64,000 nt of DNA from Guillardia theta CCMP2712 (GCF_000315625.1 NW_005434624.1:121677-185676), one strand, 5' to 3'; shown: positions 19,990 through 38,498, counted from the stretch's first letter. Numbers and translations are program-made. Notes: generated by a model from the sequence alone, not told the origin.

Positions 19990-22900
19990 TTACATGGAGC
20001 AGGGGATAAGGCAGACGTCCTGCCCCTCCTTGAGCATGTCGACGTTTTGAAAGTCCGGGTTCAAGTTCAAGATGCTCTGACGGATCTTCGCGTCAGGCCC
20101 AGCAGGGTGGCCGAAGGCGAGGAGCTAGCTCACCTTGGTTGTTGTCTGAAACCTCGCAGCGACGCTGAAGATCGACTCTCCCTCCTTGAGCTGACAGGCA
20201 CATGTTAGCCGAGCACATGGAAGGTAAGGCTGAGCGAGAGTTGGAGATGAGGGAAAGAAGGGAGCGAAGGAGGGAGAAGAAGAGGAGGAGGACTAGGCCA
20301 CAGATGAGCGCGAGGGTCCAGCAACGAGTCAGGTGGCGGATCACCTGATAGATCGGTCCGATGTTGAGCAGAGCTTGCAGCCCTTGAGTCGAGAGGACAT
20401 CAGGATCTTCAAGAGACTGTCGCACGTCAAAAGTGAGTCGTTTTCCTCAACCTCCTGTGCCTCGTCCTTTGCTCTTCTCTCACTTCCTCCTTCTTTCCAC
20501 TCCTTGCCCTCCTCCTCCTCCTCCTTCTCCTTTTCCTCCTCCTCCTGCAAAGAGGACCGTTGTTAGCTCGTCGTTGTCGTCTATTGCGTTGGCTGCAAAC
20601 AGTCGGAGCCAGTTCGTTTCAGCTGAGAACCTCTTCATCTGCAATGGCAGGATCGTCAAGATCGAGGAGGAGAGTTCAAGTGCGAGGAGGAGGAGGAGGA
20701 GGAGGAGGAGGAGGTGGTGGTGGTGGTGGAGGAGGAGGAGGTGGTGGTGCTGGAGGAGGAGGAGGAGGAGGAGGAGGAGGAGAAGGAGGAGGAGGAGGAG
20801 GGGGCACCTGGAGGAGCATAGTCTCGTGTTCGCTGGTACAGTACTTGCACTTCCTGACCTGTGGAGAATGTAACCGTCTCAAGTCTCCAGCATGGCATGT
20901 CGACCTTGATGTCCAGGCACTGGTACGATGAGTACTGCATGCCGGCTATGTCCCTGACAGCCCCTCCCCGCATCCCGTACCCTCTTGCTGATCCTACAAG
21001 GCAGACGCGGAAGGTTGAACCCTCTTGACCTCTGACGGGCCCGAAGGTCAGCTCAGACACGCTTGTCACGCCTACTTGGAGCGCCGACAGGGCCCACTGA
21101 GGAGAGAGCTGCGTGTCCGGGGACAGCGCTATGACGGATGTGTAGTTCCCCCCGGACAAGGTGAAAGTCCAGGAGCTCTTGCAACCCACGTGCGCAAAGT
21201 ACGGAGTCCCCAGCTCAGTACCAGCAAGGGGCGGCAGCCATTGGAGGGAGGAGGGGACGACGTCGAGGTCGATGCAGTAGGGCAGGCTGTAGTAGCCTGC
21301 TGACGTGGCGAGCGGGGACTCAGGGCTGAAGAGGAAGTTGAGATGCTGGGAGCACATGGTGGAATCGTCTCGGGCGACGAAGCAAACGCTTGAGACCGCA
21401 GTCAGCGTCTCCTCCCCTTCGAGCCCTCCAGCCCTACCGGATTCTCTTTCCCGCTTCCTCCTCGGCTGGTGTCCACTGCGAAGATTGAGTCGGGCATAAT
21501 GATGAGGAGGAGAGAAGAAGGAGCGAAGGAGGAGAGAAGGAGGAGAGAAGAAGGAGAGATGGAGAAGGGAAGGAGGAGGGAGGGAGAAGGGAAGGAGGAT
21601 TGCTCCGATTGAGTCGAGGGATTTGCAGAAGGAGGAAGAGAGGCAGGAAGAGAATTTTCACCTGCAATCTTCTGAAGCCCTCAGAGCACTGCGAGTCCAT
21701 GAGCTGGTTGTTGAGACGGTTGTTTGGCACGTTGATATGTGGGACGCACTGAAGAGGATCGATGCGCAGGTCTGGCAGCCCGGGGTCCTCTAGCGATAGG
21801 ATGGAGACGACATTCTGGACGTAGCAGCGTGAGGGAGGAGGAGGCAGGTGCTGGGAAGGAGCTTACCTCAGGGTTTGGATCCCTTGCCCGGATGGTGAGA
21901 TTGAGATCCTAAATGGCGGTCGGTGATCAGAACTCACAGCCAGGAAGGTGAAAGAGTGAGTGAGTGAGTGAGTGAGTGAGTGAGTGAGTGAGTGAGTGAG
22001 TGAGTGAGTGAGTGAGTGAGTGAGTGAGTGAGTGAGTGAGTGAGTGAGTGAGTGAGTGAGTGAGTGAGTGAGTGAGTGAGGGAGGGAGGGAGGGAGGGAG
22101 GGAGGGGAGGGAGGGGAGGGAGGGGANNNNNNNNNNNNNNNNNNNNNNNNNNNNNNNNNNNNNNNNNNNNNNNNNNNNNNNNNNNNNNNNNNNNNNNNNN
22201 NNNNNNNNNNNNNNNNNNNNNNNNNNGGAGGGAGGGAGGGAGTGTGGTGGTGGAGGAAGAGGATAAGGGTACCTGGTTGTCTGTTGCAATGAAGCAGACC
22301 TGCTTGTCGCTGGTGAAGAGCACTGACTGCCGGTCCCCGCCTTGCACAAACGTCATCGGAGCCGTTCCGTTGGTGTTGCCGAAGGTGACAGTCACGTTGA
22401 GGAAGAGAGAAGCTACTGAGCAGTGCGGGTTTTGCTGGTACAAGTCTGTAGAGTAGCAGGCTCCCTGCAAGTATCTTGTGCTGGTGGATTTGCTGACGAA
22501 CGCCGGATCCAGCAAGAAGATGCTCGAGTACTGGGGCTGCTCCAGGAAGTTCATTGTAACCGTGTCACCGTAGTCATCGTCGACTGCTGTGAAGAGGAAG
22601 TTGGTGGTGGCTGCTCCTTGCGCGTACTGGAAGGCAGTCATGAAGTGCAGGAGGAGGGAGTGGTAACAGCGCATGCAAGGACGACGAGGAGATCGGACAG
22701 GAACGACAAGGAGGAGAGGAGGAAGAGCAGGCTCAGGAGGACCTGGGAAGGCCATCCGTTCGCCTCAGGCCTGCCGGGCGAGTTGTCTGGATGTCTTGTT
22801 AGCTGCTTCCAGCACGCGGGCAAGTTGACGCAGTCGCTGCTGAAGTCGATGTTGGGGACGTTGCTCTGAAAGCTCTCGTTGGAGAAGAAGGAGAACAACT

Positions 22901-25147
22901 TGCAGGTGGGAGAGAGACCTGGCGGAGGATCAAAAAAGACTCAGTGGCAGAGTTGGAGGGAGGGAGGGAGGGAGGGAGGGGAGGGAGGGAGGGAAGCAGA
23001 GGGGGAGGGGTGGGAAGGGGGGGATGGAGGAGAGGGGAGGATAGGCACGGGAGGCAGGACAGAGAAGGAGGAGAGGGGGGGTTTGCACACAACTGCACCT
23101 GGGGCAACAATCCTTGGCTTGCGGCCGAAGATGTGAATGGTAACACAATGCGGAAGGCCGTAACAACAAGTAGGGCACTTCCTTGCTTGGAAGCACATGG
23201 CGAGCTTGCGGCCAGTGTCCGACTCGACGGGGTGCGCGGCCAACGGGCGACTCCCAAACACTGAGACAGTGAGGAGAGCTGTGTTGTTGGCGGTGGGCTG
23301 CTTGACGAAGAGGTGGCAGTTGGAAGTGCCGGGCGACACCTGCATGGCGTCCTTGCATCCCTGGAGGGCTGCTTGCTGTGTGTCAATCTCCACCGCGTCC
23401 CCCCCAGTCATCGTCTGCAAGCTCCTGTCGCAGAGGAGCGAGTCGGAGACACCCGGCTGGAGGTCCCAGTAGCAGACCTTGGAGGAAGAAAGGTCGTAGG
23501 CGACGGCTGAAACGTTGAAAGAGCAAGAGGACCCAACGAAGCACTCTATGAGCCGTGGTGGAGGCGAATGCCTCGGTCCGAGGGCGACGAAGATAGGGGC
23601 AAGGTTTCTCACCTGCTCCTCCTGTGTCACATGGGGACGGGGACTGTGGTTTAAGGGCCATCGAGCGATGGGGCAGAGAGGACAAGGTGGGAGCGGAACA
23701 AGCATCGACCTGATCAGTTGGATCGACGGTCACGTTGACCACGCCGAAGGTGTAGAGGGAGATGGTAGGGCAGACGATCATGGCGAGTTCCAAGTAGACA
23801 TAGACCTGAAGCCTATCTGTGACCTTGAGCCGGAGAGGGTAAACGGGGCTGCCGTTGGTCTGCCCTTTCATCGGTCCCTGGAGCGCAAGCTGCATCCCCC
23901 CTCCTGCCGCGACGTCGTTGGGGCTGAGCTTCCACTGACCTGCCAACAGAGCGCAACGTGACCCGGAAAGAAGCAAGAAGGTAGAGGAGGTTTAAAGTGT
24001 AAGGAGAAAGAAAGAGGAGTGACTCCAAGAACGAAGAGGCAGTGAGTGAGTGAGTGAGTGAGTGAGTGAGTGAGTGAGTGAGTGAGGGAGTGAGGAGGAG
24101 GAGGTAGTGTCAAGTCGAGTATGGAGAAGAAAAACCGAAATGAACAGGGACAAGTGAAGGGAGGGGAGAAGTTGAGGGGATCGACGTAAACAAGGGCACA
24201 CCTCGAACGCCAGCAGTGTAATCAGAATGGCAGGAAAGTGTATACCCATCGGTCGACACCTTTGCTATATCCCAAGTCATGTCAACGTTGTTACAAGACT
24301 CAACGCAGTTGGTAGCCTTGCTTGCACCGTCCTCATCAAAACCTGACGTCGATCAGAAAGATTCCTAGGGTCCAGGGAGCTCACCTGGAAGCGCAAGACT
24401 GACAGTCCGACTTGCATCTGACACCAGGGGGATGGTGAAGATCGGTAGCATCGGTGCTACGGGAGAGTGATGGTTGTTCAACGGGCTCATCTGATACTCG
24501 TTGTAGCCTGTGCTCGTACCAGCACACTCAGCAAACGTCACCCTGGTAGTCAGGCGGAAAGGAGAGCTGGAGTAGTTCGCCATGGCAGTGCTGCAGAGAC
24601 TATCGCCTGCTTCTGGAGCAGGAGCAAGGCAGATCTGACTTGACGTAGTCGTGCACTGGGAGAACCGATTGACACCCTCGAAGGATGCTATGACTTCAGG
24701 CAGGGAGCTCGAGCAGCTGTAGAGGCGGACGAGATCGTAACGGAGTTGGAAGGCCTTGTGTGCGACGGACCCGACCATGAAGTCTCGGATGCCCACCACT
24801 CTGAACTTCAAGGAGGTAGCTGTCGCACCGGCATCCCCGAGGCTGAATTTGAAGCTTGAGCTGACATCCACCTCCCCGCCCACCCCCCCGGGCGCACCGG
24901 CGCCGAAGAAGGAGCTGTGTACGAGGAGAGAGACATGGAAGAGGATCTTCGCCGGTGCCCTTGTGCACGTAGACACTTGATCTGAAGGGAGGAGCACGTC
25001 CAGATACTGCACGCAATCTTGAGGAGATACCAGCATCTGAGGAACCACCCCGATCCTCTCCCAGGTGAGCGAGCCTGAGATGACGTAGCTTCCCGCCATG
25101 GGGATCCATAAGGCAAGGAGGATAGCGAAGATGATGCTGCAAGTCAT
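19990..25147 (-). CDS. Large secreted Cys-rich protein with C-terminal LysM domain(s); many exons, spans an assembly gap
   Basis: N-terminus MTCSIIFAILLALWIPMAGS (signal peptide). Last exons splice to IYQLKEGESIFSVAARFQTTTKSILNLNPDFQNVDMLKEGQDVCLIPCSM* (LysM consensus), preceded by a second LysM-like unit CKYCTSEHETMLLQMKRFSAETNWLRLFAAN..LEDPDVL. That all middle exons belong to one gene is inferred. Confidence 0.7.
20684..20800. repeat. (GGA)n/(GGT)n trinucleotide tract (intronic)
   Basis: Direct reading; lies between a minus-strand GT donor (~20807) and AG acceptor (~20640). Confidence 0.9.
21953..22126. repeat. (GAGT)n plus (GGGA)n microsatellite (intronic)
   Basis: Direct reading of the sequence. 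Confidence 0.95.
22127..22226. other. Assembly gap (100 N)
   Basis: Run of n flanked by simple repeats. Confidence 1.
24041..24092. repeat. (GAGT)n microsatellite (intronic)
   Basis: Direct reading of the sequence. Confidence 0.9.
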
Positions 25148-25189
25148 TCCAGAACTCTTGCCCCGGCTTTCCCCTTCCTCTGCTCCTTG

Positions 25190-25300
25190 CCCCTGCCTCC
25201 TGCCTCCTGCCTCCTGCCTCCTGCCACCTGTCTCCTGCCTCCTGCCTCCTGCCACCTGCGTCCTGCTTCCTGCTTCCTGCGTCCTGCCTCCTGCTTGCTG
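25190..25300. repeat. (CCTGCCT)n-like heptamer tandem repeat upstream of the LysM gene start
   Basis: Direct reading of the sequence. Confidence 0.8.
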
Positions 25301-25592
25301 CTCTCCCCGCTTTTGATCCGAAGCAGGTGATGGATGTGATGGTTGGATTTGACCTGATATCGGGCCCCCCTCGGAGTTCCCTCTATTTTCCAACTCCCAC
25401 CCTACCTTAGAGTACCCCTCATACCTGGAATTATCAGGTCAAAGGACGGGTCCGATAGAGACTCGAGGACCCCTACCCGCCATTTGATGATTTGATATGC
25501 GCATCCCTGCTTCAGTGCAGAAATTTCTCAGGCCATCTACCCAAGCTGGCTGAAGAACTGGTTTCAGAAGGGGAGCTCGAAGAAGAACCTTG

Positions 25593-26779: not shown

Positions 26780-27355
26780 TCACGCAAAAATCTCTGGAGA
26801 CCAATTGGGCATTTTGATGTCGTCGTCGACCCTTGGCAAGTACAGATCTATCCATTCTGCTGGATTCACCATGACAACCTCACCATTTTCTGTAAGATGG
26901 AGAATGGAGTTGTTGTCGTTTTCAAGGTATTCTGGCTCAATTGTTCTGTTCTCTTGGTCTACCAGCATGCTGCACGCATTCAGATCACTGCCCGTTTCTT
27001 CCGATGAAATCTTCTGATCATAAATATATGAAGTATCTGAACTCGCAACGTCCTGTCGATGCTGTGCCGGTAAGAATTCTTGCAGCCATGCTTCGTAGGA
27101 CTCAAAAGCATTTCGATTCATTTGCTGTGCTTCCTGCACCGGCTGAGATCTATTTCCTCCTCGCTTGTACGGCCAGCGGGAGATGCCCAGGCGTCGGCAG
27201 GCAGACTTCAAGCTGGTGAGGGAGATGCCGAGGACGTGAGCAGCTTGATCCTGAGGGGTGTGGAAGAGAGGGGAGAGAGCCTGGAGGGAGAGGGAGACAT
27301 GGGAGGGAGCAGAGGAGCCGGGGCGAGGCCGGGGAGCGATGGAGACTGAAGCCAT
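26780..27355 (-). CDS. RWP-RK transcription factor, type A copy 1 (191 aa, intronless)
   Basis: LSLQALSPLFHTPQDQAAHVLGISLTSLKSACRRLGISRWPYKR matches the RWP-RK domain consensus. Confidence 0.92.
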   Translation of the reverse strand: MASVSIAPRPRPGSSAPSHVSLSLQALSPLFHTPQDQAAHVLGISLTSLKSACRRLGISRWPYKRGGNRSQPVQEAQQMNRNAFESYEAWLQEFLPAQHRQDVASSDTSYIYDQKISSEETGSDLNACSMLVDQENRTIEPEYLENDNNSILHLTENGEVVMVNPAEWIDLYLPRVDDDIKMPNWSPEIFA

Positions 27356-27604
27356 GGTGGAAGTGCACTGAAGAGAGGTGGGTTGGGAATGATCAGACAA
27401 GGAAAGGCAGCGGATGAGAGGGGGGCGCAGACTAGTAGATATGAAGGTCGGGATATAATTTATTAATGATAATAGACTCGGAGCAACTTGTTGTCGTGCC
27501 AGTGTGAACCCTTGTTGTCGTGCCAGTGCGACCGTCACGTTATCCAATTTCAAGTCACGTTACCTTGTAGTAAACTCAGGGACGGAATTGCTGCGCCTGC
27601 CAAA

Positions 27605-28192
27605 ATGCGTGGATCTTCCGTGGTGGTCGCTCCTCGCTTCCGTCCTCACTCCTCCTTCTCCCCCATCGAAGTCCGCCTCGACATCCCCACCCTCTCCTCT
27701 CTCTTCCATATCTCCCAAAAAGACGCCGCCGCCCATCTCGGAATGTCTCTGAGCAGCCTCAAGTCGGCCTGCCGCAGGCTTGGGCTGACGCGTTGGCCTT
27801 TCAAGCGGGGGAAGAGATCCCTGACGACGATGCACGGATCGTTCAGACCGGAGGAGGGCTCGGCGAGCGCTACGGCAGCGTCAAGTGGCAAGACAGGAGC
27901 GCAGGAAGGCTACGGGTCATGCCAGGATGGGGCTGGGCTGGGCTGGGCGGACGCGGTTACAGAAGGCAAGGTGGGGCAGGAAGAAGGAGACAAGGAGGGA
28001 ATAGCCGGGGAGGATGATGTAGGGTCATGGCAATCAGAGGACGGGCAGGCAGGGGATGTTGAAGAGGAGACGGGGATGGGTCTGGAGAAGGGAGGGAGGG
28101 GGCAGGTTGGAGAGGATGGCTGGGTAGGATGGTACACGGGATGGGAGGAAGAAGGAGCATACCAAGGGGAGGGGGGGATGCTTTTTCAATGA
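27605..28192 (+). CDS. RWP-RK transcription factor, type B copy 1
   Basis: LSSLFHISQKDAAAHLGMSLSSLKSACRRLGLTRWPFKR; Gly/Glu-rich tail. Confidence 0.92.
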   Translation: MRGSSVVVAPRFRPHSSFSPIEVRLDIPTLSSLFHISQKDAAAHLGMSLSSLKSACRRLGLTRWPFKRGKRSLTTMHGSFRPEEGSASATAASSGKTGAQEGYGSCQDGAGLGWADAVTEGKVGQEEGDKEGIAGEDDVGSWQSEDGQAGDVEEETGMGLEKGGRGQVGEDGWVGWYTGWEEEGAYQGEGGMLFQ

Positions 28193-28291
28193 AAATTTAT
28201 CAAAATTTACTTCTTCCTCACTCACTTTCGACAGTGTGTATTAATGATTGATATTTATTTTATTTGAAGAGCAGATATATTAAGTTTTGAT

Positions 28292-28849
28292 TTAATAGAA
28301 AGGTCTGATATGCATGTCATCGTCTTCGCATGTGACAAACCACTTTATCCATTCACCCATTCTATCGTTGGCTTGATTTGAGGTATCTTCATCACCGTCC
28401 TCGACTACTAAGAACTCGTTTGCTAGTGCCTCATTCACTTGCTCCTCGCAAAAGAGATGTGCCCTTGGAGAGAACTCATCTATCCAGGAGTTTGTTGCTT
28501 CTGATTCACCTTGCAGAGCACTTGTGGAATGTTTGTTCTGGTACAAAGTGGCAGATTCTTCAAACCAAGCAGTCACGATTTCCGTTCTTGTTTCGCTTGT
28601 GATACTATCATTTGATTCTTTCTTTGTTCCACGCCTGTATGGCCAGCGAGGTATTCCAAGGCGTCTGCAAGCAGACTTCAAGCTGGTCAGGGAGATTCCG
28701 AGGAGCTGTGCAGCTTGATCTTGCGGTGTATTGAAGAGTGGCGCAAGAGCATCGACACTGAGGCGAACCTCGAGGGGCGACTGACGCTCTCCAGCCCGAG
28801 GGCGAGGTGCGATGGTGACGGAGTCTTGGTTGAGAAATTGCGAGGCCAT
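28292..28849 (-). CDS. RWP-RK transcription factor, type C copy 1
   Basis: LAPLFNTPQDQAAQLLGISLTSLKSACRRLGIPRWPYRR. Confidence 0.92.
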   Translation of the reverse strand: MASQFLNQDSVTIAPRPRAGERQSPLEVRLSVDALAPLFNTPQDQAAQLLGISLTSLKSACRRLGIPRWPYRRGTKKESNDSITSETRTEIVTAWFEESATLYQNKHSTSALQGESEATNSWIDEFSPRAHLFCEEQVNEALANEFLVVEDGDEDTSNQANDRMGEWIKWFVTCEDDDMHIRPFY

Positions 28850-29521
28850 GTCTGGAAGGTGGCAGGAGCTTCTTGTGCGTTGCAGGATAATCAGAGGGTG
28901 GAGCGAGGAACGTGGAGTGCTGGTGGCGGGGAGGGACTCCTTTTTATTGGGGGCTTCCCTTACCGGGATCGCATCACTTGGGACGAAGCACGTCGCACAC
29001 GTCATCTCCCAGCGAAAAATTAGTTTCATAGAACCACTTTGACTAGACAACACATCGATCCGCCAAACGAGGGATTTCTCTGTTTTCTCGAATATGCCTG
29101 TTTGCCGAAAATGAAGCGATGCGATTAAACAGGTTATTATCTTCCAAAAGCCTCAATGTTGTAGCCCTTCATCGATCGAATTGCGATGCTGATCCGACCG
29201 ACTGTTTTAGATCGCACTCCTCATGTCCCGAAGAAATCTCCCAAAACACGTATTTTCAATGTTGCGACACGCCTCCAGCGATCTGAGGCGAGCTCAACGT
29301 GTCGTTGCGCCGTGCCGCATCCCGACAGTCCGCCTCAGGACATGTTGGTGTTTTTTTTGTTTCAATTTTTAGTTAAAGTATCATCAAGCTTGCCTCAATC
29401 TATTGCTATTGAAAACTGAAGGACAGCTAGTTGAGACTCCTGCCAACCTGACTCAAGAGACCTTACGTGATAATCTGCCATGCTCGCCTGGCTCTCCGTG
29501 GCGGGGCCGGGGAAGGGGAGG

Positions 29522-31319
29522 ATGAAGCTTGCCGCCTTCATGCTACTTTCCGTCTTGTGTAGGTCATCAGCATGGCAAGGAACGATGACAACGAAGCTGA
29601 GGATGAGCAGCGAGACAAGGAGGGATGTGATGAGGAAGATGATGACGGTAAGGGCTGACGAGCCAAAGATTGAGTAGCCTACTGACTGGTTCAACCCTCA
29701 GTTCGGAGCTCTTGCACCGATGAAGGTAGGGCATTGTCAAGAAGAGAAGGACGAATCCTTTCTGAACTTTCGCTCTCCTCGTTGTTAACGACCGTCTCCT
29801 CCCCCCTAGGTGTACGCACAAGGAGCGGTCAATCTGAACCCTCTGGCTGATGAGTGGGAAGGATTCAAGGTAGATCTGCATCATCCTGATTTGCCCCAAT
29901 GCGAATAATTCATGTCCCAAGGAAACCAGGACATTCAATAGAGGCGGGAAGGACATTGTTCTTGAACAGGTTTTGCAGAGTGACTTGGGTGTGGCACGAA
30001 AATCTGACCTGGTTGCACGGAAGGAATTCACGTCCAAGAGGAAGAACGGGCTTGCAGTATACGAAGGAAATGTTGTGTTGACAGACTATATGCAGGCATG
30101 TGGCAGAAATCGCGATGCTCAGTTTCTATCTCACACATTGTGCCCCACAGTCGCTTCCCAAGGAGTTGTGGAAGGATAAGAATGTATTGGAGCTTGGATG
30201 CGGTTGCCTGCTGCCCCGTTTGCCGTGCTCCACTTCTTACAAGGAGAAAACACTACCAGGGACAGGCCTCGGATCCATCACAGCATCCCTTCTTGGGGCC
30301 AAGGTGACATACATAACCTTGGAGGAGCCACTGCTGTTCTGACCAAGGCAAAGCTCGTCACTGCAAGCGACCGTGACCCCGTGGTGGACGCAGCAGCCAG
30401 GAAGTTGTTGTGGACTGACTTGCTGTGGACCAGGTGTTGTCTTTGGCGGAGAGAAACATGTTAAGAAACTTGAAAGATGTCTGCCCTTCTGCCTCCGTGT
30501 GAACTCATCTCACCAGCTCTGTGTAGGAAACCTCATTCAGGACCGCAAGGATCTCGTACAAAATCGCGCCATCTCCTCAAAGCTTGTAACGCTGCTGTCA
30601 GATGGGGAACGCCATTCTGCACGACAGAAGCTCAATACATGAGGGATATGGGACAGGTGAATCCTCCTTGATCAGTGTTTCCCAGCACTGATCCTACTCT
30701 TCTAATCCTCTAGTGTTGGGACTCGAAGTTTGCATTTCAAAAAGTAGATGACTATGCTCCTTGCAGTTTAAATCCTTTGGTTACCTTTCATCAGGGCTAT
30801 GACGTCATCATCGGAGCAGACCTTACCTACTCAGCAGGATTGATTCCATTGTTGGCTGGTTTCTACCTTCTGACATCCGACGACCTTGCGCTTAAATACC
30901 GTGCTTGCAGATACTCTGAATGACTTCAGTGGACCTCAGACCGAGATCTTATTGTGTTGGTCAGTAATTGCTCTCAAATATTCTGAATTCTAATTCGATG
31001 GAAGGTGCGAACCAAAGCTCTTCACGTGGAACACAGATGTACTTCTTGCTTTCGCTCCTCTGAATCTATGTTTGATTCCCGCTTTGTCAACGTCCACTCG
31101 AAATCGATGGCTTTTTCTTCACTCACTGTTGCTTTGAAGGTGATGGAGGAATTGAACAAAGAGATCGAATACTTCAGATCAAGATTCAAGGTGGAGACAA
31201 TAAGGAGGTTAGATTTTCTCCTTTAACAGGCGACGATCTGCCCTGAATGACTGCTTAGCGGCCCGGCGTTTCAAGGGCACGACAACACGTTCTTGTTGCG
31301 AATGAAAAAGAAAACTTGA
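29522..31319 (+). CDS. SAM-dependent lysine methyltransferase (Methyltransf_16/METTL21-like), probably organelle-targeted; many short exons
   Basis: Exons GLAVYEGNVVLTDYM, WKDKNVLELGCG|TGLGSITASLLGAKVTASD, WG, YDVIIGADLTY; hydrophobic N-terminus MKLAAFMLLSVLCRSSAW. Confidence 0.8.
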
Positions 31320-31449
31320 GGATCGCAGAGGCAAGGTCCTGAAGAGCATGGTTGTTCAGGATGTTGGAGACGCGAGATCTTACGTAAGGCGCATCGAAAA
31401 ATCGGAAATAAAACGATTTCACTAATTACTCTATCGGAATTTTTGCAAG

Positions 31450-31980
31450 CTAGCTCAAAGCAACTGACTCTTTCTTCCAAGGCCGAATGGTAAAGCTAAC
31501 GTCCTCAGCGTCGGTGCAATGAAGATACCAGGAAAGCCAAGGCTCTTCAATCTCTGTGCTTTTGTTGTCCGAAGCAATGTCCCAATCAAGCCGTCTGATG
31601 GAAATACCATGCACCTCGGGTAGGTGGTTGAGCACTCTGACGGTCGATATTGCGAACGCACCGGATTCACTCGAGGATGCATGCTCATTGGTGCTAGTAA
31701 AGGCTTTGATCCAGTCTTCTTCAGTGCTCAAATTACTGCTAAGGTAGTGTCTTTGGTTTTTCATTGATGGAGAGTTGTTTGTCCCTCGCTTGTATGGCCA
31801 GCGGGAGATGCCCAGGCGTCGGCAGGCAGACTTCAAGCTGGTGAGGGAGATGCCGAGGACGTGAGCAGCTTGATCCTGAGGGGTGTGGAAGAGAGGGGAG
31901 AGAGCCTGGAGGGAGAGGGAGACATGGGAGGGAGCAGAGGAGCCGGGGCGAAGCCGGGGAGCAACGGAGACTGAAGCCAT
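31450..31980 (-). CDS. RWP-RK transcription factor, type A copy 2 (176 aa)
   Basis: Same head as copy 1 (about 4 nt differences), different tail. Confidence 0.92.
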   Translation of the reverse strand: MASVSVAPRLRPGSSAPSHVSLSLQALSPLFHTPQDQAAHVLGISLTSLKSACRRLGISRWPYKRGTNNSPSMKNQRHYLSSNLSTEEDWIKAFTSTNEHASSSESGAFAISTVRVLNHLPEVHGISIRRLDWDIASDNKSTEIEEPWLSWYLHCTDAEDVSFTIRPWKKESVALS

Positions 31981-32478
31981 GGCGATGGTTGTGTGGTGGG
32001 GTTGAGCTGTTCAATAGTGGCGGTGCCCCCTCCTTGCTAGCAGGGGAGGGAGCCGAGGTTGTTTTTATTGCCTTATCGGACGTCACGTTACTTTTACATC
32101 GGTGATGTTTGATCACGTTTGATGTCATGGCCATATTTTACCACCAACATGCAAAACCCTATCAGCTAAACATCACGTTTCCTCAGATATAGTCCGACTG
32201 TTTCAGAAACGAAAACAAGATTTTTGGGCGGGCATCCGTTTTTTTTCTAGCAGCATGCATCTGTCACGGTTTAGCCGATATCCTCGCAACTGTCAGAATC
32301 GAAACGACGAGATTTATCAGTCAGTGGACAATCGCTCGTATCGTTGGCAGGATCCAAACGACTCACTTCACATATAATCTGCGCTCCTCTCCCCTCGTTT
32401 GTTCATTCCCTCCCATCTCTTCCTTTCTCCTTCCAAGCTCATTGAGGACATCTGATATCAAGATCTAGAGCAAATAAC

Positions 32479-33063
32479 ATGGAACCTTCCGTGGTGGTCG
32501 CTCCTCGCTTCCGTCCTCACTCCTCCTTCTCCCCCATCGAAGTCCGCCTCGACATCCCCACCCTCTCCTCTCTCTTCCATATCTCCCAAAAAGACGCCGC
32601 CGCCCATCTCGGAATGTCTCTGAGCAGCCTCAAGTCGGCCTGCCGCAGGCTTGGGCTGACGCGTTGGCCTTTCAAGCGGGGGAAGAGATCCCTGACGACG
32701 ATGCACGGATCGTTCAGACCGGAGGAGGGCTCGGCGAGCGCTACGGCAGCGTCAAGTGGCAAGACAGGAGCGCAGGAAGGCTACAGGTCATGCCAGGATG
32801 GGGAGGGGCTGGGCTGGGCGGGCGCGGTTACAGAAGGCAAGGCGGGGCAGGAAGAAGGGGACAAGGAGGGAATAGCCGGGGAGGATGCTGTAGGGTCATG
32901 GCAATCAGAGGATGGGCAGGCAGGGGATGTTGAGGAGGAGACGGGGATGGGCCTGGAGAAGGGAGGGAGGGGGCAGCTTGGAGAGGATTGCTGGGTAGGA
33001 TGGTACACGGGATGGGAGGAAGAAGGAGCATACCAAGGGGAGGGGGAGATGCTTTTTGAATAG
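32479..33063 (+). CDS. RWP-RK transcription factor, type B copy 2 (194 aa)
   Basis: Near-identical paralogue of 27605-28192. Confidence 0.92.
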   Translation: MEPSVVVAPRFRPHSSFSPIEVRLDIPTLSSLFHISQKDAAAHLGMSLSSLKSACRRLGLTRWPFKRGKRSLTTMHGSFRPEEGSASATAASSGKTGAQEGYRSCQDGEGLGWAGAVTEGKAGQEEGDKEGIAGEDAVGSWQSEDGQAGDVEEETGMGLEKGGRGQLGEDCWVGWYTGWEEEGAYQGEGEMLFE

Positions 33064-33368
33064 ATTCAAAACATTGTTTTGAATAAAAACTTGTGGCTTG
33101 ATACACTCCGGATAATTAACCACAATATTTATCAGTTTTCTTCTCTGATAACAGATCATGCTGGTCTTTGTCATTTTGTTTTGACCGAATCTGAGGTGAA
33201 AAACATCTTGTTTGATTGCGAAGATCTTCAAGGACGAAAACTTTGGTATAACATCTGATTTCATAATGTGGTAACTAAACAAATCAAAGTCAAGAGACTC
33301 TTGTGCATGCCAAATTTCGATCAATCTTGAACTTGTTTAAGTATTTACAATGTGTTTCTGCGAACAAA

Positions 33369-33992
33369 TCAAGGATACTGTGTTGCAACGATCCCAGATG
33401 AGCTGGACTGTTCTATTTCTTCGCAGTCAGCATCAGTTCCTGACATGTACCATTCTATCCATACTTGATCCATGACTTCGGTTCGGCTCCCCTCGATTTC
33501 ATCCAGCAGGCTGTCCCCCGATCCTTCAGATTCTTTTCGTTGGTTTGAACCCTCAAACTGTTGCCCAGACGTCTCCTGCCCATCGCTGTTGTCATTGTCT
33601 TCTGAAAACATCTCCAGGTCTGCTGTCGTGTCGCTGGTTACACTTCTTGTGGCAGGAGGATGCGTCTTGTTCTCCTCCCGGGTGGTGGTCGCCTTTGGCC
33701 CCCGCGTGTATGGCCATCGAGCAATGCCGAGTTGTCTGCAGACAGCCTTGAGGCTTGTGACTGAGATCCGAAGCTGTTTAGCGGCATCTTCTTGTTTCAT
33801 GGTGAAGAGAGGTCGAATAGTGTCGAGATTGAGTGTCACTTCTATAGGGGCTGGAATGGGGGCCCCTACTCTAGTCCTAGGAATGACGGTCACTGATTCT
33901 GGAGTAGCGGTGTGCTGTGCAGAATCATTGCGATACTGTGCCGATGCTTGATTTGCATCAAAGGGTGAGATTTGGTGAGCATACTCAGCCAT
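33369..33992 (-). CDS. RWP-RK transcription factor, divergent type C copy 2
   Basis: IRPLFTMKQEDAAKQLRISVTSLKAVCRQLGIARWPYTR. Confidence 0.9.
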   Translation of the reverse strand: MAEYAHQISPFDANQASAQYRNDSAQHTATPESVTVIPRTRVGAPIPAPIEVTLNLDTIRPLFTMKQEDAAKQLRISVTSLKAVCRQLGIARWPYTRGPKATTTREENKTHPPATRSVTSDTTADLEMFSEDNDNSDGQETSGQQFEGSNQRKESEGSGDSLLDEIEGSRTEVMDQVWIEWYMSGTDADCEEIEQSSSSGIVATQYP

Positions 33993-34581
33993 CGCTCTCT
34001 TTTGTTTTCTTGTACAGAAAGATACGCTGAACTTACAAGACTTTTTTTTGAGAAACAAGATTGAATTCCAACTACCTGAAGCCTTCAGGGCTGGTGTGTG
34101 AAGTTTCTAAGGTCTGTTGGGAGGGGAAACAAGTGAGATCAAGGATGATCTGCGAGGAAACCAGAATCCAAGAGAATCAGAGACAGAGGCGAGGAGAGGG
34201 AGGCGAACGAGCAAGCACGGGGTGAGGGGCTGGTTCATATCGTATCTATCACTGCGACTGGTTGCTTGTACCGAAATCAATCGATTTCAGCATTCAACCA
34301 GTCGAGCGACTGTCAGCATACTAGTTTGCTTGTCCCCGGGAGACGGTGCGAATTGAGGGTCATCCGTGCAAATACAGTCCCAAAATGTTTTATAAAAGTT
34401 GAATAAATCACATAAAGGTGTAAATTGAATATCGAACCATGAAATCTTTATTTCCAGTACTGTACGCCCCCAGCGGATCACCCGCAGGCCTCCGGGAGAC
34501 CGGGGCCGGGACCGGGGCCGCGGGCACTCTCAGTGTCCGGAGTCGCAGGACTCTGAGCCCGGTGGGTTAGCGCCTGTTGCA

Positions 34582-36100
34582 ATGGCGACATCATCGCTAC
34601 TGTTGCTGCTCCTCGGGACCTGCGCCCCCTCCTGCTTGTGTTTCATCGCGTCAGGGACACAGAGATACAGCTCGTGTGTACTGATGCGTCGACATGCCGC
34701 ATGCACTGTCAGAAGCAGAAGGAGGTGAAGGAGGGTTCGCCCAAGTTGCCTGTGACCTCCTGCTGCAGCCATTCTGTAGCTAGTACTTGTCTGCAACTTG
34801 AGGCCTCAACCAAGGATGGATTCGATGATGACGTAAGCTTCTTTTCTATGATCCGTTTGCATCAATCGAAATCCTGGCAGGGGAGCAGAAATCGATACCA
34901 GCAGATGGAAGAATTCAACGAAGCAGCCTATTCCGAACTTAGGACGTTCTCTGCTGTCTCGACAGGTGATTACGGCAATCATGGACGTCTGTTGTCATTA
35001 TTTTATATGTCTGCTGACTCGAATGATCTTCTTGCACCGGGCAGGAGCTTCTCTAGATTCGGCCGATGAGAAGCCGCTACTACCAAACCCTGAGCTCTCT
35101 GCTCAACAGAGCATCGCAGCGGTACTGACAGCCATGAAGCTCAACAGCAAGACTGGCTGCAGGTTAGACTCCCTGCAGGTCTTTGTGTCGATTGGATGAC
35201 TCTAGCCTGTGATGGGACAGAGTATATCTCCGTTTCATGAGCGAGCATAACGCGCAGAGCAATTTGACGCCACAGGTCTGAATAGAGCTGTAAAGCTTAG
35301 CTAATGTCTTTGGTTTCATTAAGATCGTTGATGATCTTGTAGGAACTCGAAGATTTCCTGAAGATGTCGGGAGAGGTAAGTCACCGGCTTCTTCGTTGAG
35401 GGATGTGAGGGGGTAGGAGGCTTGGAAGCGGGGTGGATGTTAGGGCTGATGAGAATGAGGTTCAGTAGATATGTGGAGGATTCGTTGGACTGTCCATATT
35501 AGTCGTCTCCTCCTCTCTCGCCATTCTTTGATAGAGATGTTGAACACGGCAGATGCAAGTACTGCTCGGGAATTTCCGGTGAAGATCCCCATATAACGTT
35601 TGTCGAGCTCCCCGTTGGATAATGAAAGCATCTCAGCTCATTTCACTTTCCAACGCCGACGTTTGAGCAAGGTAGCCAACGGATTCTGAATTACATCTCA
35701 TCTCTCTCCGAATCTCCTTGTCTTTCTTCAGTCTGAGATCGTAATTCAGATGTCGACGGCTGCAGAATTGCTGTGCAGGAGGTGACCCTATCAGTTCCAG
35801 GTAGTACAGCCTGATGACGTAGATAACAGATCCTTATGGTTCATGTTTTCCATGCAGGTTTCCTTGCTGCAATGATGGGAGTCACACGTGGCTGGAGCTC
35901 CGTGGTATCTCGTTTGTTTTTGTTCTGTGTTGGATACAAGTTAGTGGTATCTCACTTGTTTTTGTTCTGTGTTTGATACAAGTTAGGGGTGTCGGTTTGC
36001 TCTGTGTTTGGTACAAGTTTGTGTCCTGATCAAGATTGCTGAACGAACCAGGCAAGGCTGAGGTGGCAAATGAGCCGAAACAAGATCTCAGACGGTAAAG
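34582..36100 (+). CDS. Hypothetical signal-peptide-bearing (probably plastid) protein, many short exons; end approximate
   Basis: MATSSLLLLLLGTCAPSCLCF.. then exons such as LLPNPELSAQQSIAAVLTAMKLN and VYLRFMSEHN; no secure family call. Confidence 0.45.
35902..36020. repeat. ~42-bp imperfect tandem repeat, 2-3 copies
   Basis: GTGGTATCTC..TTGTTCTGTGTT.GATACAAGTTA repeated. Confidence 0.75.
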
Positions 36101-36478
36101 GTTTTCGTTTCTATACTGTTTTATTGACAACATTGCTCAAAAGTCTGGCTGACGGACTCAATCGAAATCTTACCGAGATAAGCTTGAGGTACTCGATTGT
36201 AAACATTACTGCTAGAAGCCTTCCTTTACCGATATCAAACTTCCGTTATCTCGAATATCTCCTGTAAAGTTCTTGCATGTGCTGAAATCAATCTCAATCA
36301 TGAAGAACTTTTTCGTTTATACCAACTGCTTCGGCTGATGCATTCCCAAGTGAGTCCGATTATTCGTCTGGTATTCCAAATCGCATCGTACTCTGCCACT
36401 CTGCCTTCGCAAGGACAATACAACTCGCTGTCTCATCACTCTCGGTAGATGACGATCAGATCTCATTTCAACGATCAT

Positions 36479-37075
36479 TCACATCTCCTCAGAAAGAGCA
36501 TTTTGCTTGCTACTGCAAGAAAGTGTGAAGCTAATGTCCTCAACATCTTGGTCACTACAACCAAGGTACCAGGCTATTCATCCTTGTTGAAAATCCAAGC
36601 TGAAATCTTCGTCGGCATGTCTTGTGGTGGATTTGGCGGGAAAATGATGCGCTGCAATTTTACGAGAATGTGCTGGAGTGTTCTCTTTGTAATCTTCGAT
36701 GTATTCACTGCGAACTTCCACGTCCACGTTTGATGCTGCATCGAATAAGCTTTGGGATAAATGAGAGCGGCACTGCAGGGATCGTAAAGGCATGAAAGCC
36801 TTGATCCACTCGGCGTCTGCATCCGCTACGCTCTGCTGAGCTTCGTGCTCTCGGTCTGCCCTCCTCGTTGACCTCTGTCCTCGCTTGTACGGCCAGCGGG
36901 AGATGCCCAGGCGTCGGCAGGCAGACTTCAAGCTGGTGAGGGAGATGCCGAGGACGTGAGCAGCTTGATCCTGAGGGGTGTGGAAGAGAGGGGAGAGAGC
37001 CTGGAGGGAGAGGGAGACATGGGAGGGAGCAGAGGAGCCGGGGCGAGGCCGGGGAGCGATGGAGACTGAAGCCAT
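36479..37075 (-). CDS. RWP-RK type A copy 3; in-frame TGA at 36578-36580 truncates the conserved C-terminal motif (truncated allele, pseudogene or readthrough)
   Basis: ORF stops at QQG*, but the frame continues IAWYLGCSDQDVEDISFTLSCSSKQNALSEEM*, homologous to the copy 2 ending WLSWYLHCTDAEDVSFTI..VALS*. Confidence 0.88.
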
Positions 37076-37751
37076 GGCGGTGGTTGTGATGGTAGAAGCC
37101 GAGTGAAAAGATTACTGATAATACTCGATTTCAATGGGAGACTTCGTGAGTCATTCCAAAGGATCATGATCCACTTCTCGTTTACACCCGTCTTGCTTTG
37201 TAGTAAAGCTCAGCGTACAAAATCACGTTACCCTCATTTCGCAGTCATGGCTGTATTTTACATCTAGATCATGACATGTCATGGTTGCATCTGGAGAAAG
37301 ATCCTCTTTTTCCAAAATGACTATTTTCGATTGACTTTTTTGTCATCAAAGTGATCTCGTGGACCACTCTCGTCTCCCCCCCGTCCCCCCCCCCCCCTTT
37401 CCCCGCTAGAAAAAAGGGCACGTTGTCCACTCTTGAACAACTCAACTCCACCACACAACCACCGCCATGGCTTCAGTCTCCATCGCTCCCCGGCCTCGCC
37501 CCGGCTCCTCTGCTCCCTCCCATGTCTCCCTCTCCCTCCAGGCTCTCTCCCCTCTTTTCCACACCCCTCAGGATCAAGCTGCTCACGTCCTCGGCATCTC
37601 CCTCACCAGCTTGAAGTCTGCCTGCCGACGCCTGGGCATCTCCCGCTGGCCGTACAAGCGAGGACAGAGGTCAACGAGGAGGGCAGACCGAGAGCACGAA
37701 GCTCAGCAGAGCGTAGCGGATGCCGACGCCGAGTGGATCAAGGCTTTTATG
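36791..37751. repeat. Inverted repeat: ~298-bp arms (36791-37088 / 37454-37751), ~365-bp spacer
   Basis: The arms are the 5' halves of two divergent RWP-RK genes; about 3 mismatches by eye. Confidence 0.9.
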
Positions 37752-38132
37752 TCTGCCAGCAGGTTTCATGGCCTTCCAGTCTGTCCTGAGCAATCGAATA
37801 TTGACCAAGCTGAGGATATTCTCTATCACGAGCACACTTGTGAGGCATTGATGGGTGACGTGATAGATCAACGATTTATGCATGGACACATAGCTTGCAG
37901 TCAAGAGGGCATGGGCTGTCTTGAGCACATGTGGAGTAGCGCGAACGGAAATATTGAGTCCTATCCGTGCAAAGTTGAGGTTGCAGACGAAGCCGTGATC
38001 AAAGAGGAGAACGTGCTCATGACGCTCGATGAGAAAGAAGACTCCGTCTTGTCCGAGGACGACATCTGGCTGCGATGGTTTCAACCTGTAGAGGATGACG
38101 ACATTGCCAGAAGGAGTTTAGCGCTCGTGTGA
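37467..38132 (+). CDS. RWP-RK transcription factor, type A copy 4 (221 aa)
   Basis: Same head; tail ends DIWLRWFQPVEDDDI. Confidence 0.92.
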   Translation: MASVSIAPRPRPGSSAPSHVSLSLQALSPLFHTPQDQAAHVLGISLTSLKSACRRLGISRWPYKRGQRSTRRADREHEAQQSVADADAEWIKAFMSASRFHGLPVCPEQSNIDQAEDILYHEHTCEALMGDVIDQRFMHGHIACSQEGMGCLEHMWSSANGNIESYPCKVEVADEAVIKEENVLMTLDEKEDSVLSEDDIWLRWFQPVEDDDIARRSLALV

Positions 38133-38498
38133 ATGAATCGGAATTCTTTGATTCTTGCCAGTTGCAACTCAACCTTGCAACGCCTTGTTGTGTCAGCTCT
38201 GCAGTTCCTCCCTTCAATACCCTTCACTCCCCTTACCTCTCCCCTCACTGTTCACATGTCCAACAGAAGATCTTTCCGGGACTCTGTCAAAGATGTGAAG
38301 TGTGTTGTCCCAAAAAGTTCTCCAGACACGGAATATTGCACGACTGCTTCCTCTTGAAGCCTCCTCACAGGACGATGAGATGTAGGGAACTCAAACACAA
38401 GGAGGGGACGAGGGGGGCAGGCTTGGTCTCGAGCCCGCAGTCATGGTGGGCAGATGACTTCATTCTCTTCATGTACAACCATCAGCGCCAGGGCTTCT

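Follow-up and report, generated by a model that had tools for sequence, protein, structure and literature searches.

Domain-restricted gene conversion as the probable source of near-identical RWP-RK heads in an array of old paralogues in Guillardia theta

Introduction

Interlocus gene conversion is familiar from the gamma-globin genes, the opsins and the Y palindromes. Together with concerted evolution it has been described for human segmental duplications (PMC3790853, PMC4467073) and Drosophila duplicates (PMC3924832), and has been treated in theory (PMC3924837). Here we describe a very likely case in the cryptophyte alga Guillardia theta, found in a 64,000-nt stretch of strain CCMP2712 (GCF_000315625.1, NW_005434624.1:121677-185676, or C50:121677-185676 in our numbering of the 669 contigs of this 87,145,349-base assembly; hereafter ‘the window’, from whose first letter positions given without a contig are counted). 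Eight intronless genes of the RWP-RK transcription-factor family lie there within 11.4 kb (26780-38132), and four of them (A1 to A4) begin with an almost identical ‘head’ of about 200 bp that encodes the DNA-binding domain and is followed by widely diverged ‘tails’.

The locus shares with known interlocus conversion its short near-identical tracts in old, diverged duplicates, the abrupt boundaries of these tracts, the closeness of the copies in direct or inverted orientation and the GC enrichment of the converted tracts. It differs in that the tract is one whole folded DNA-binding domain of a transcription factor, and in that one array after another shows the pattern, within a cryptophyte nuclear family of at least 150 genes. 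We regard it as a clean new example of a known process; there is no new mechanism here.

Elsewhere the RWP-RK family is linked to gamete differentiation and nitrogen responses. The window proteins are similar to those of the MID and RKD type (volvocine MID, plant RKD; PMC4086717) in being short and having the RWP-RK domain as their sole recognizable fold, and unlike them in that the domain is N-terminal (residues 21-65 of 165-221) rather than near the C-terminus, in their cryptophyte-type C-terminal Trp motif and in their occurrence as hundreds of copies in arrays. Our literature search found no account of a cryptophyte RWP-RK expansion or of its conversion; there is a passing count of 56 RWP-RK genes for Rhodomonas salina. 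A layout of one constant part joined to different parts also resembles, superficially, the programmed constant/variable cassettes of antigenic variation and diversity-generating elements. Unlike such cassettes, however, the A tails are stable enough to have recognizable orthologues in another genus, and the array shows no sign of dedicated machinery, of an archive of silent cassettes or of an expression site.

Finally, GC-biased gene conversion has been surveyed across eukaryotes, with an entry for Guillardia theta of 3 chromosomes at 26% GC and no significant signal (PMC5635611). As in GC-biased conversion, GC content at third codon positions (GC3) is raised at our loci where conversion is inferred, with both G and C up; unlike that survey entry, the evidence comes from nuclear paralogues, and it is correlative only. 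The 3 chromosomes at 26% GC we take to be those of the Guillardia theta nucleomorph genome.

Results and discussion

A shared head in four genes of one array

The array, whose home is very probably the Guillardia theta nuclear genome, consists of open reading frames of 165-221 codons, each with the RWP-RK domain at its start, and includes three head-to-head pairs (A1/B1, A2/B2 and A3/A4). All six proteins tested score 51-62 bits against PF02042, for which the cut-off is 29.3, and B2 and D were assigned to the family by tblastn and alignment. The RWPxRK signature takes the forms RWPYKR, RWPFKR, RWPYRR and RWPYTR, with R-W-P invariant and the basic pair kept, in the order K-R in the A and B genes. 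The A genes are A1 (26780-27355, minus strand, 191 residues, 60.8 bits against PF02042; head 27158-27355, codons 1-66, and tail 26780-27157), A2 (31450-31980, minus strand, 176 residues; head 31784-31980), A3 (36578-37075, minus strand, 165 residues as it stands; head 36878-37075) and A4 (37467-38132, plus strand, 221 residues; head 37467-37664).

When the copies are compared in register with the ATG, and positions counted from it, A1 and A3 show no difference from -2 to +197, a tract that takes in the 198 nt from the ATG to codon 66, with mismatches from +198 onwards. A4 departs from both by a single head difference at +89, while A2 has four private bases (+15, +17, +28 and +185) and breaks at +197, such that head identity ends within one codon of RWPYKRG. 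The four heads thus contain no more than 5 private variants between them. The shared tracts nevertheless have unequal ends, as the initial annotation had remarked. A3 and A4 are identical from -13 to about +288, +89 excepted, reaching 36788 in A3 and 37754 in A4, and so form a head-to-head inverted repeat (36788-37754) with arms of 301-309 nt at 98-99% identity and a spacer of 350-365 nt (36788-37096 against 37754-37447 in the longest version, 309 nt at 98%). A2 and A4 share instead an upstream stretch from -40 to -1, with 4 mismatches, in their 5′ untranslated regions (31981-32020, minus strand, and 37427-37466, plus strand). Beyond these tracts, the tails of A1, A2 and A3/A4 and the intergenic DNA have no mutual similarity in blastn at word size 9 and E 1e-4. 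The two central observations of the initial annotation, a near-identical head of about 200 bp in four genes and its abrupt end after RWPYKRG before tails that cannot be aligned as DNA, are thus borne out, and all of its figures hold as well.

The remaining four genes take no part in this identity. B1 (27605-28192, plus strand, 195 residues), divergent from A1, and B2 (32479-33063, plus strand, 194 residues), divergent from A2, are twins that share 576 nt at 97.6% identity (27615-28190 in B1), exactly their coding sequence, with the first 300 nt 100% identical and flanks that cannot be aligned. C1 (28292-28849, minus strand, 185 residues; head 75-80% identical to the A heads) and D (33369-33992, minus strand, 207 residues from the ATG at 33992) are two further paralogues outside any homogenized group. 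The longest perfect runs shared with the A head are at most 17 nt in C1 and at most 10 nt in B and D.

A genome-wide search with the head, a check that the initial annotation had suggested, placed the A head in this array and nowhere else, the next best match being C1 at 80%; the exchange is therefore local. Spread by a mobile element is ruled out by the same confinement to one array. A recent 5-kb segmental duplication is similarly ruled out by spacers and promoters that do not match: the spacers 29054-31449 and 34059-36577 show no similarity in tblastx, and short-word blastn of the three divergent promoters finds only the 40-nt A2/A4 stretch in common.

Copies and transcripts in independent reads

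In a draft assembly of 669 contigs, the assembler might have homogenized or collapsed heads that lie in repeats of 200-300 bp. Four public runs were mapped against 32400-38200: the independent DNA run X1, the run X2, the RNA run X6 and the RNA run X21, which behaves like a sense-stranded 3′-tag library. In X1 the single-copy contig 33017-36848 has a depth of 66.5, the head unitig 36891-37046 a depth of 180.6 and the head bin a depth of 242.8, so that the head is covered at about 2.7-3.7 times single copy, in agreement with 3-4 copies. At 36878 the head has loose ends, one continuing as the A1 tail (X1, X2) and one as the A2 tail (X2). The private bases of A2 recur in X1 as other letters on the A4 head (37462, 37482, 37484 and 37495), and a second X1 contig carries the B1 version of the B2 tail and reproduces the B1/B2 differences. 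In X6, moreover, one transcript contig of 1752 nt joins the region upstream of A2, the head and the A2 tail. As copies, private variants and tail junctions are all reproduced, the DNA evidence coming from an independent run, we give an assembly or consensus artefact practically no credence.

The same runs document transcription beyond A2. B2 is represented by an X6 contig and by sense 3′ reads in X21, D by minus-strand 3′ reads in X21 and an X6 contig, and A4 by a low depth of sense reads at its 3′ end in X21. The B2 messenger RNA ends at about 33101, some 38 nt past the stop codon, as seen from poly(A) loose ends in 9 raw RNA reads.

Young heads on old tails

Separate divergence estimates for heads and tails, another check proposed at the outset, were made by the method of Nei and Gojobori (NG86), with 55 synonymous sites in the A heads. 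Synonymous divergence (dS) among the A heads is 0-0.056, or 0-3 synonymous differences, while the A tails among themselves are saturated, with a proportion of synonymous differences of about 0.8. Between an A head and the C1, B or D heads dS is about 1.0-1.15, and the tails are again saturated; between B1 and B2 it is 0.009 in the head and 0.055 in the tail. With the great age of the paralogous units, their intergenic DNA has become impossible to align.

A yardstick is provided by a 1461-nt contig from the Logan collection (L041, from SRR23967302), which derives from a relative about 12% diverged, carries the C1 orthologue and has 1383 nt that align with the window at 88%, intergenic parts among them. 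C1 and its orthologue differ by a dS of 0.165 in the head and 0.26 in the tail. Because the dS of the A heads (0-0.056) lies below these values (0.165-0.26), the A heads coalesce later than the split from this relative.

The head is strongly constrained as protein, as shown by the ratio of non-synonymous to synonymous divergence of about 0.09 between the C1 head and its orthologue, and purifying selection alone, on codons or RNA as well as on residues, might be thought to keep heads identical without recombination. We find this very improbable. The same domain does gain synonymous change, with a dS of 0.165 between orthologues and of about 1 between A and C1, B or D; the A heads differ at 0-3 synonymous sites despite this freedom, and untranslated bases are identical as well.

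One end of the Logan contig deserves separate mention. Its positions 1315-1461, compared with window 27736-28190, give the 3′ end of a B gene followed directly by a B head. The B-head stretch is identical to B1 and B2 at 82 of 82 positions, and about 308 nt of the B tail are missing, through a real deletion or a contig artefact.

Tails, trees and predicted structure

As proteins the A tails are homologous: within largely disordered sequence, two short motifs are conserved, one W[IL]xAF-like and about 25 residues past the domain, the other a C-terminal W[IL]xW[FY] with acidic residues after it. The closest proteins outside Guillardia come from the cryptophyte Hanusia phi and are likewise built of a head, about 75% identical, and a tail. 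The A2 tail aligns with that of the Hanusia protein P0003 at a Smith-Waterman score of 114 (z 15.5), compared with 32-37 (z <2) against A1, A3 and A4. Similarly, in the tail tree A2 and P0003 are sisters (support 93/98), joined by A3 (78/93), and an approximately unbiased (AU) test rejects the four Guillardia A tails as one clade (p 0.018). In the head tree, by contrast, A1 to A4 form one clade (88/87) with P0003 outside. The C1 tail groups with Hanusia P0006 and P0007 and with the protein of the Logan contig. A metagenome scan for related arrays yielded nine contigs, all of them distant; they carry two-domain proteins or single genes, and neither an array nor a close orthologue is among them.

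The initial annotation had left open whether conversion or cassette shuffling was at work. Under the latter, a recently duplicated head of 200-300 bp would have been pasted before unrelated open reading frames by illegitimate or unequal recombination, for which one may cite the abrupt breaks at both head ends, the tails that cannot be aligned as DNA, and the mosaic nature of A3, whose first 96 codons match A4 and whose C-terminus resembles A2. The tails are not unrelated, however, since the W[IL]xAF-like motif and the C-terminal W[IL]xW[FY]-acidic motif are common to all of them, and the Hanusia proteins already have the head-plus-tail layout. Homologous replacement of an existing head suffices, and a non-homologous joint is unnecessary. 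We thus consider shuffling unlikely and retain the conversion half of the earlier proposal.

What is homogenized has a simple structural counterpart in an AlphaFold2 model of A1, in which residues 1-66 have block means of the per-residue confidence score (pLDDT) of 72-92, while most of the tail falls below 60. The modelled fold has a strand at 3-6 paired with a strand at 20-23, then three helices, with weak helices at the two tail motifs. As predicted by this model, the homogenized block is the whole folded and conserved part of the protein, starting essentially at the ATG. A sequence search of the PDB returned no solved RWP-RK relative.

GC content of the homogenized tracts

The initial annotation had described the heads as GC-rich polypyrimidine/polypurine tracts and the tails and C-type heads as richer in AT, which base composition confirms. 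The A heads have a GC content of about 0.63-0.65, a GC3 of 0.73-0.75 and a coding strand that is 69% pyrimidine, rising to 77% over the first 110 nt; the A tails have a GC3 of 0.46-0.58. GC3 is likewise 0.78 in the heads and 0.63-0.65 in the tails of the B genes. In C1 it is 0.55 in the head and 0.41 in the tail, with head pyrimidine at 0.57, and in D it is 0.49 and 0.53, with head pyrimidine at 0.52.

This contrast extends across the family. Over 23 loci of the genome, with a homogenized head group taken as two or more copies at least 97% identical, the 14 such groups have a mean GC3 of 0.83, compared with 0.68 in their own tails (Wilcoxon, 4e-4) and 0.60 in 19 single heads (Mann-Whitney, 9e-6). 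At third positions C stands at 0.48 and G at 0.35 in homogenized heads, compared with 0.28 and 0.27 in single ones. The GC bias that had been raised as possible is thus supported, by correlation only. As the contrast lies within the same genes it argues against expression-linked codon selection, and we infer that GC-biased repair, rather than selection, lies behind the raised GC3.

A truncated copy with a perfect head

A3 is of particular interest as it is truncated. Its TGA (36578-36580) takes the very position of the first Trp in the paralogues' C-terminal motif; past it, the rest of the motif and an ending like that of A2 and P0003 continue in frame. The stop lies inside the X1 contig 33017-36848, which has 0 other letters relative to the window. 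Two RNA data sets contain no trace of A3, X6 having a depth of 0 across 36474-37249 and X21 not a single read across 36474-37443. That a truncated copy for which no RNA was seen still has a perfect head suggests that homogenization is independent of the usefulness of the gene, and hence mechanical rather than adaptive.

This copy bears on the initial annotation's phrase of one DNA-binding specificity kept on several effector tails. Read as a cause, the phrase would mean that selection maintains a single specificity on several regulatory tails and that conversion is merely the means. Some features of the array would suit such a design: the head sequence is the same in three of the four proteins and has two residue changes in A2, the tails vary yet retain conserved motifs, and A2, B2 and D are transcribed, with A4 at a low level. 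A3, however, has a TGA in a conserved motif, no RNA seen and a perfect head; the identity takes in all 55 synonymous sites and reaches the 5′ untranslated region, beyond any need at the protein level; and GC3 is in excess only within the tract, in keeping with a neutral repair bias. On this evidence an adaptive design seems decidedly improbable. The phrase describes the outcome, while its use as a cause, like the label ‘effector’, is an assumption.

Recurrence across the family

Beyond the window, at least 150 RWP-RK hits were scored in the genome, all above the Pfam cut-off, out of 571 candidates, and many lie in local groups. The arrays are tandem or head-to-head, for example seven copies with a period of about 1528 bp at C2:281944-291187. 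At the loci examined, the domain sequence is nearly always the same within a cluster and differs between clusters. Specifically, domains are 95-100% identical in arrays on C147, C50 at 520 kb, C5 at 1.08 Mb, C87 and C38, where the tracts end 20-58 nt past the RWP codon (97 nt for the pair on C38) and tail identity rises barely or not at all above the random level. In 11 of the 27 within-locus pairs with domains at least 97% identical, global identity of the tails is under 70%; pairs between loci give a background of 0.50 ± 0.08.

Further observations concern the family at large. In some subfamilies (L006-L016, on C6, C16, C54, C38 and C455) an intron seems to interrupt the domain: the reading frame opens only at ‘(Q)G[LI]SLT[SA][LF]K’, with non-coding-looking sequence before it, in contrast to the intronless genes of the window. 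A profile built from the eight genes and their Hanusia relatives matched 4611 cluster representatives with E <= 1e-3, and 589 when the limit was tightened to E <= 1e-10. Among the matches P0009-P0153, many proteins of 130-260 residues show the head combined with the C-terminal Trp motif. A few long matches have 2-5 RWP-RK stretches, such as P0013 with 2414 residues.

How the heads may have been kept alike

We consider it highly probable that the A heads are explained by domain-restricted, GC-favouring interlocus gene conversion among old paralogues. The four A genes would be old members of a local array of small RWP-RK transcription-factor genes, in which the first 66 codons, a short N-terminal strand and the RWP-RK helix-turn-helix, are probably the only folded part. 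Non-allelic conversion would repeatedly overwrite this head, between copies up to about 10 kb apart and in direct or inverted orientation. Such exchange would run only through DNA that is still similar, from near the ATG to within a codon of the domain end, and would halt on reaching intergenic DNA or the fast-evolving, largely disordered tails, which have ceased to pair. C1, B and D would have drifted too far and been left out, to form conversion groups of their own (B1 with B2) or none. If conversion favours G and C, converted heads would become GC3-rich.

Perfect runs of at most 17 nt are short for heteroduplex formation in homologous recombination, which fits the exclusion of C1, B and D even though they lie between the A copies. 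We infer heteroduplex repair as the molecular pathway, and a homology threshold for exchange. The conversion mechanism put forward by the initial annotation is supported by the identity pattern, the dS contrast, the orthology of the tails, GC3 and the recurrence of the pattern in other arrays.

Several points weigh against this explanation. Conversion is read from a sequence pattern and no event was seen directly. X1 and X2 may derive from the assembly's own culture strain, in which case they exclude assembly error and not a peculiarity of the strain. The tail clade submitted to the AU test was picked after the pairwise scores were known. For the heads, an AU test on 66 protein columns, Hanusia being compared as protein only, does not reject a pairing of A2 with P0003 (p 0.158). 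In the trees, as the initial annotation had expected, heads group by genome and tails by orthologue, with the head test weak at the protein level. The GC3 comparison treats arrays as independent though they are related subfamilies, and several low-GC3 singles belong to one subfamily. Lastly, C rises more than G at third positions, and a codon-usage or transcription-linked bias could do likewise.

Other features of the window

An intron-rich gene (34566-36319, plus strand) lies between D and A3, where an X6 RNA contig skips eleven GT..AG introns of 44-177 nt, one of which contains a 42-nt tandem repeat (35902-35985). Upstream of the array are a (GTGA)n microsatellite adjoining a 100-N assembly gap, a second (GTGA)n and an array of the 7-mer CTCCTGC (21948-22127, 22127-22226, 24040-24090 and 25169-25308 for these features together).

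Implications

A broader reading would make array-by-array homogenization of the domain a family-wide mode of evolution in cryptophytes, in which each array would hold a private binding specificity while its tails diversify. Such a mode might be an engine for new regulatory specificities, and the GC bias might be a first nuclear trace of meiotic-type recombination in an alga in which sex has never been observed. We offer this as speculation, and think it rather doubtful.

The array itself is a textbook-quality case of conversion confined to one folded domain, in which old paralogues are young in one part and ancient in another. It provides correlative evidence for GC-biased conversion in a cryptophyte nuclear genome, for which the only earlier Guillardia result that we found was non-significant (PMC5635611), and it documents a very large and essentially undescribed expansion of RWP-RK genes in a cryptophyte. 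As the heads are homogenized and the tails old, trees or duplication dates that are based on the RWP-RK domain only will be wrong for this family.

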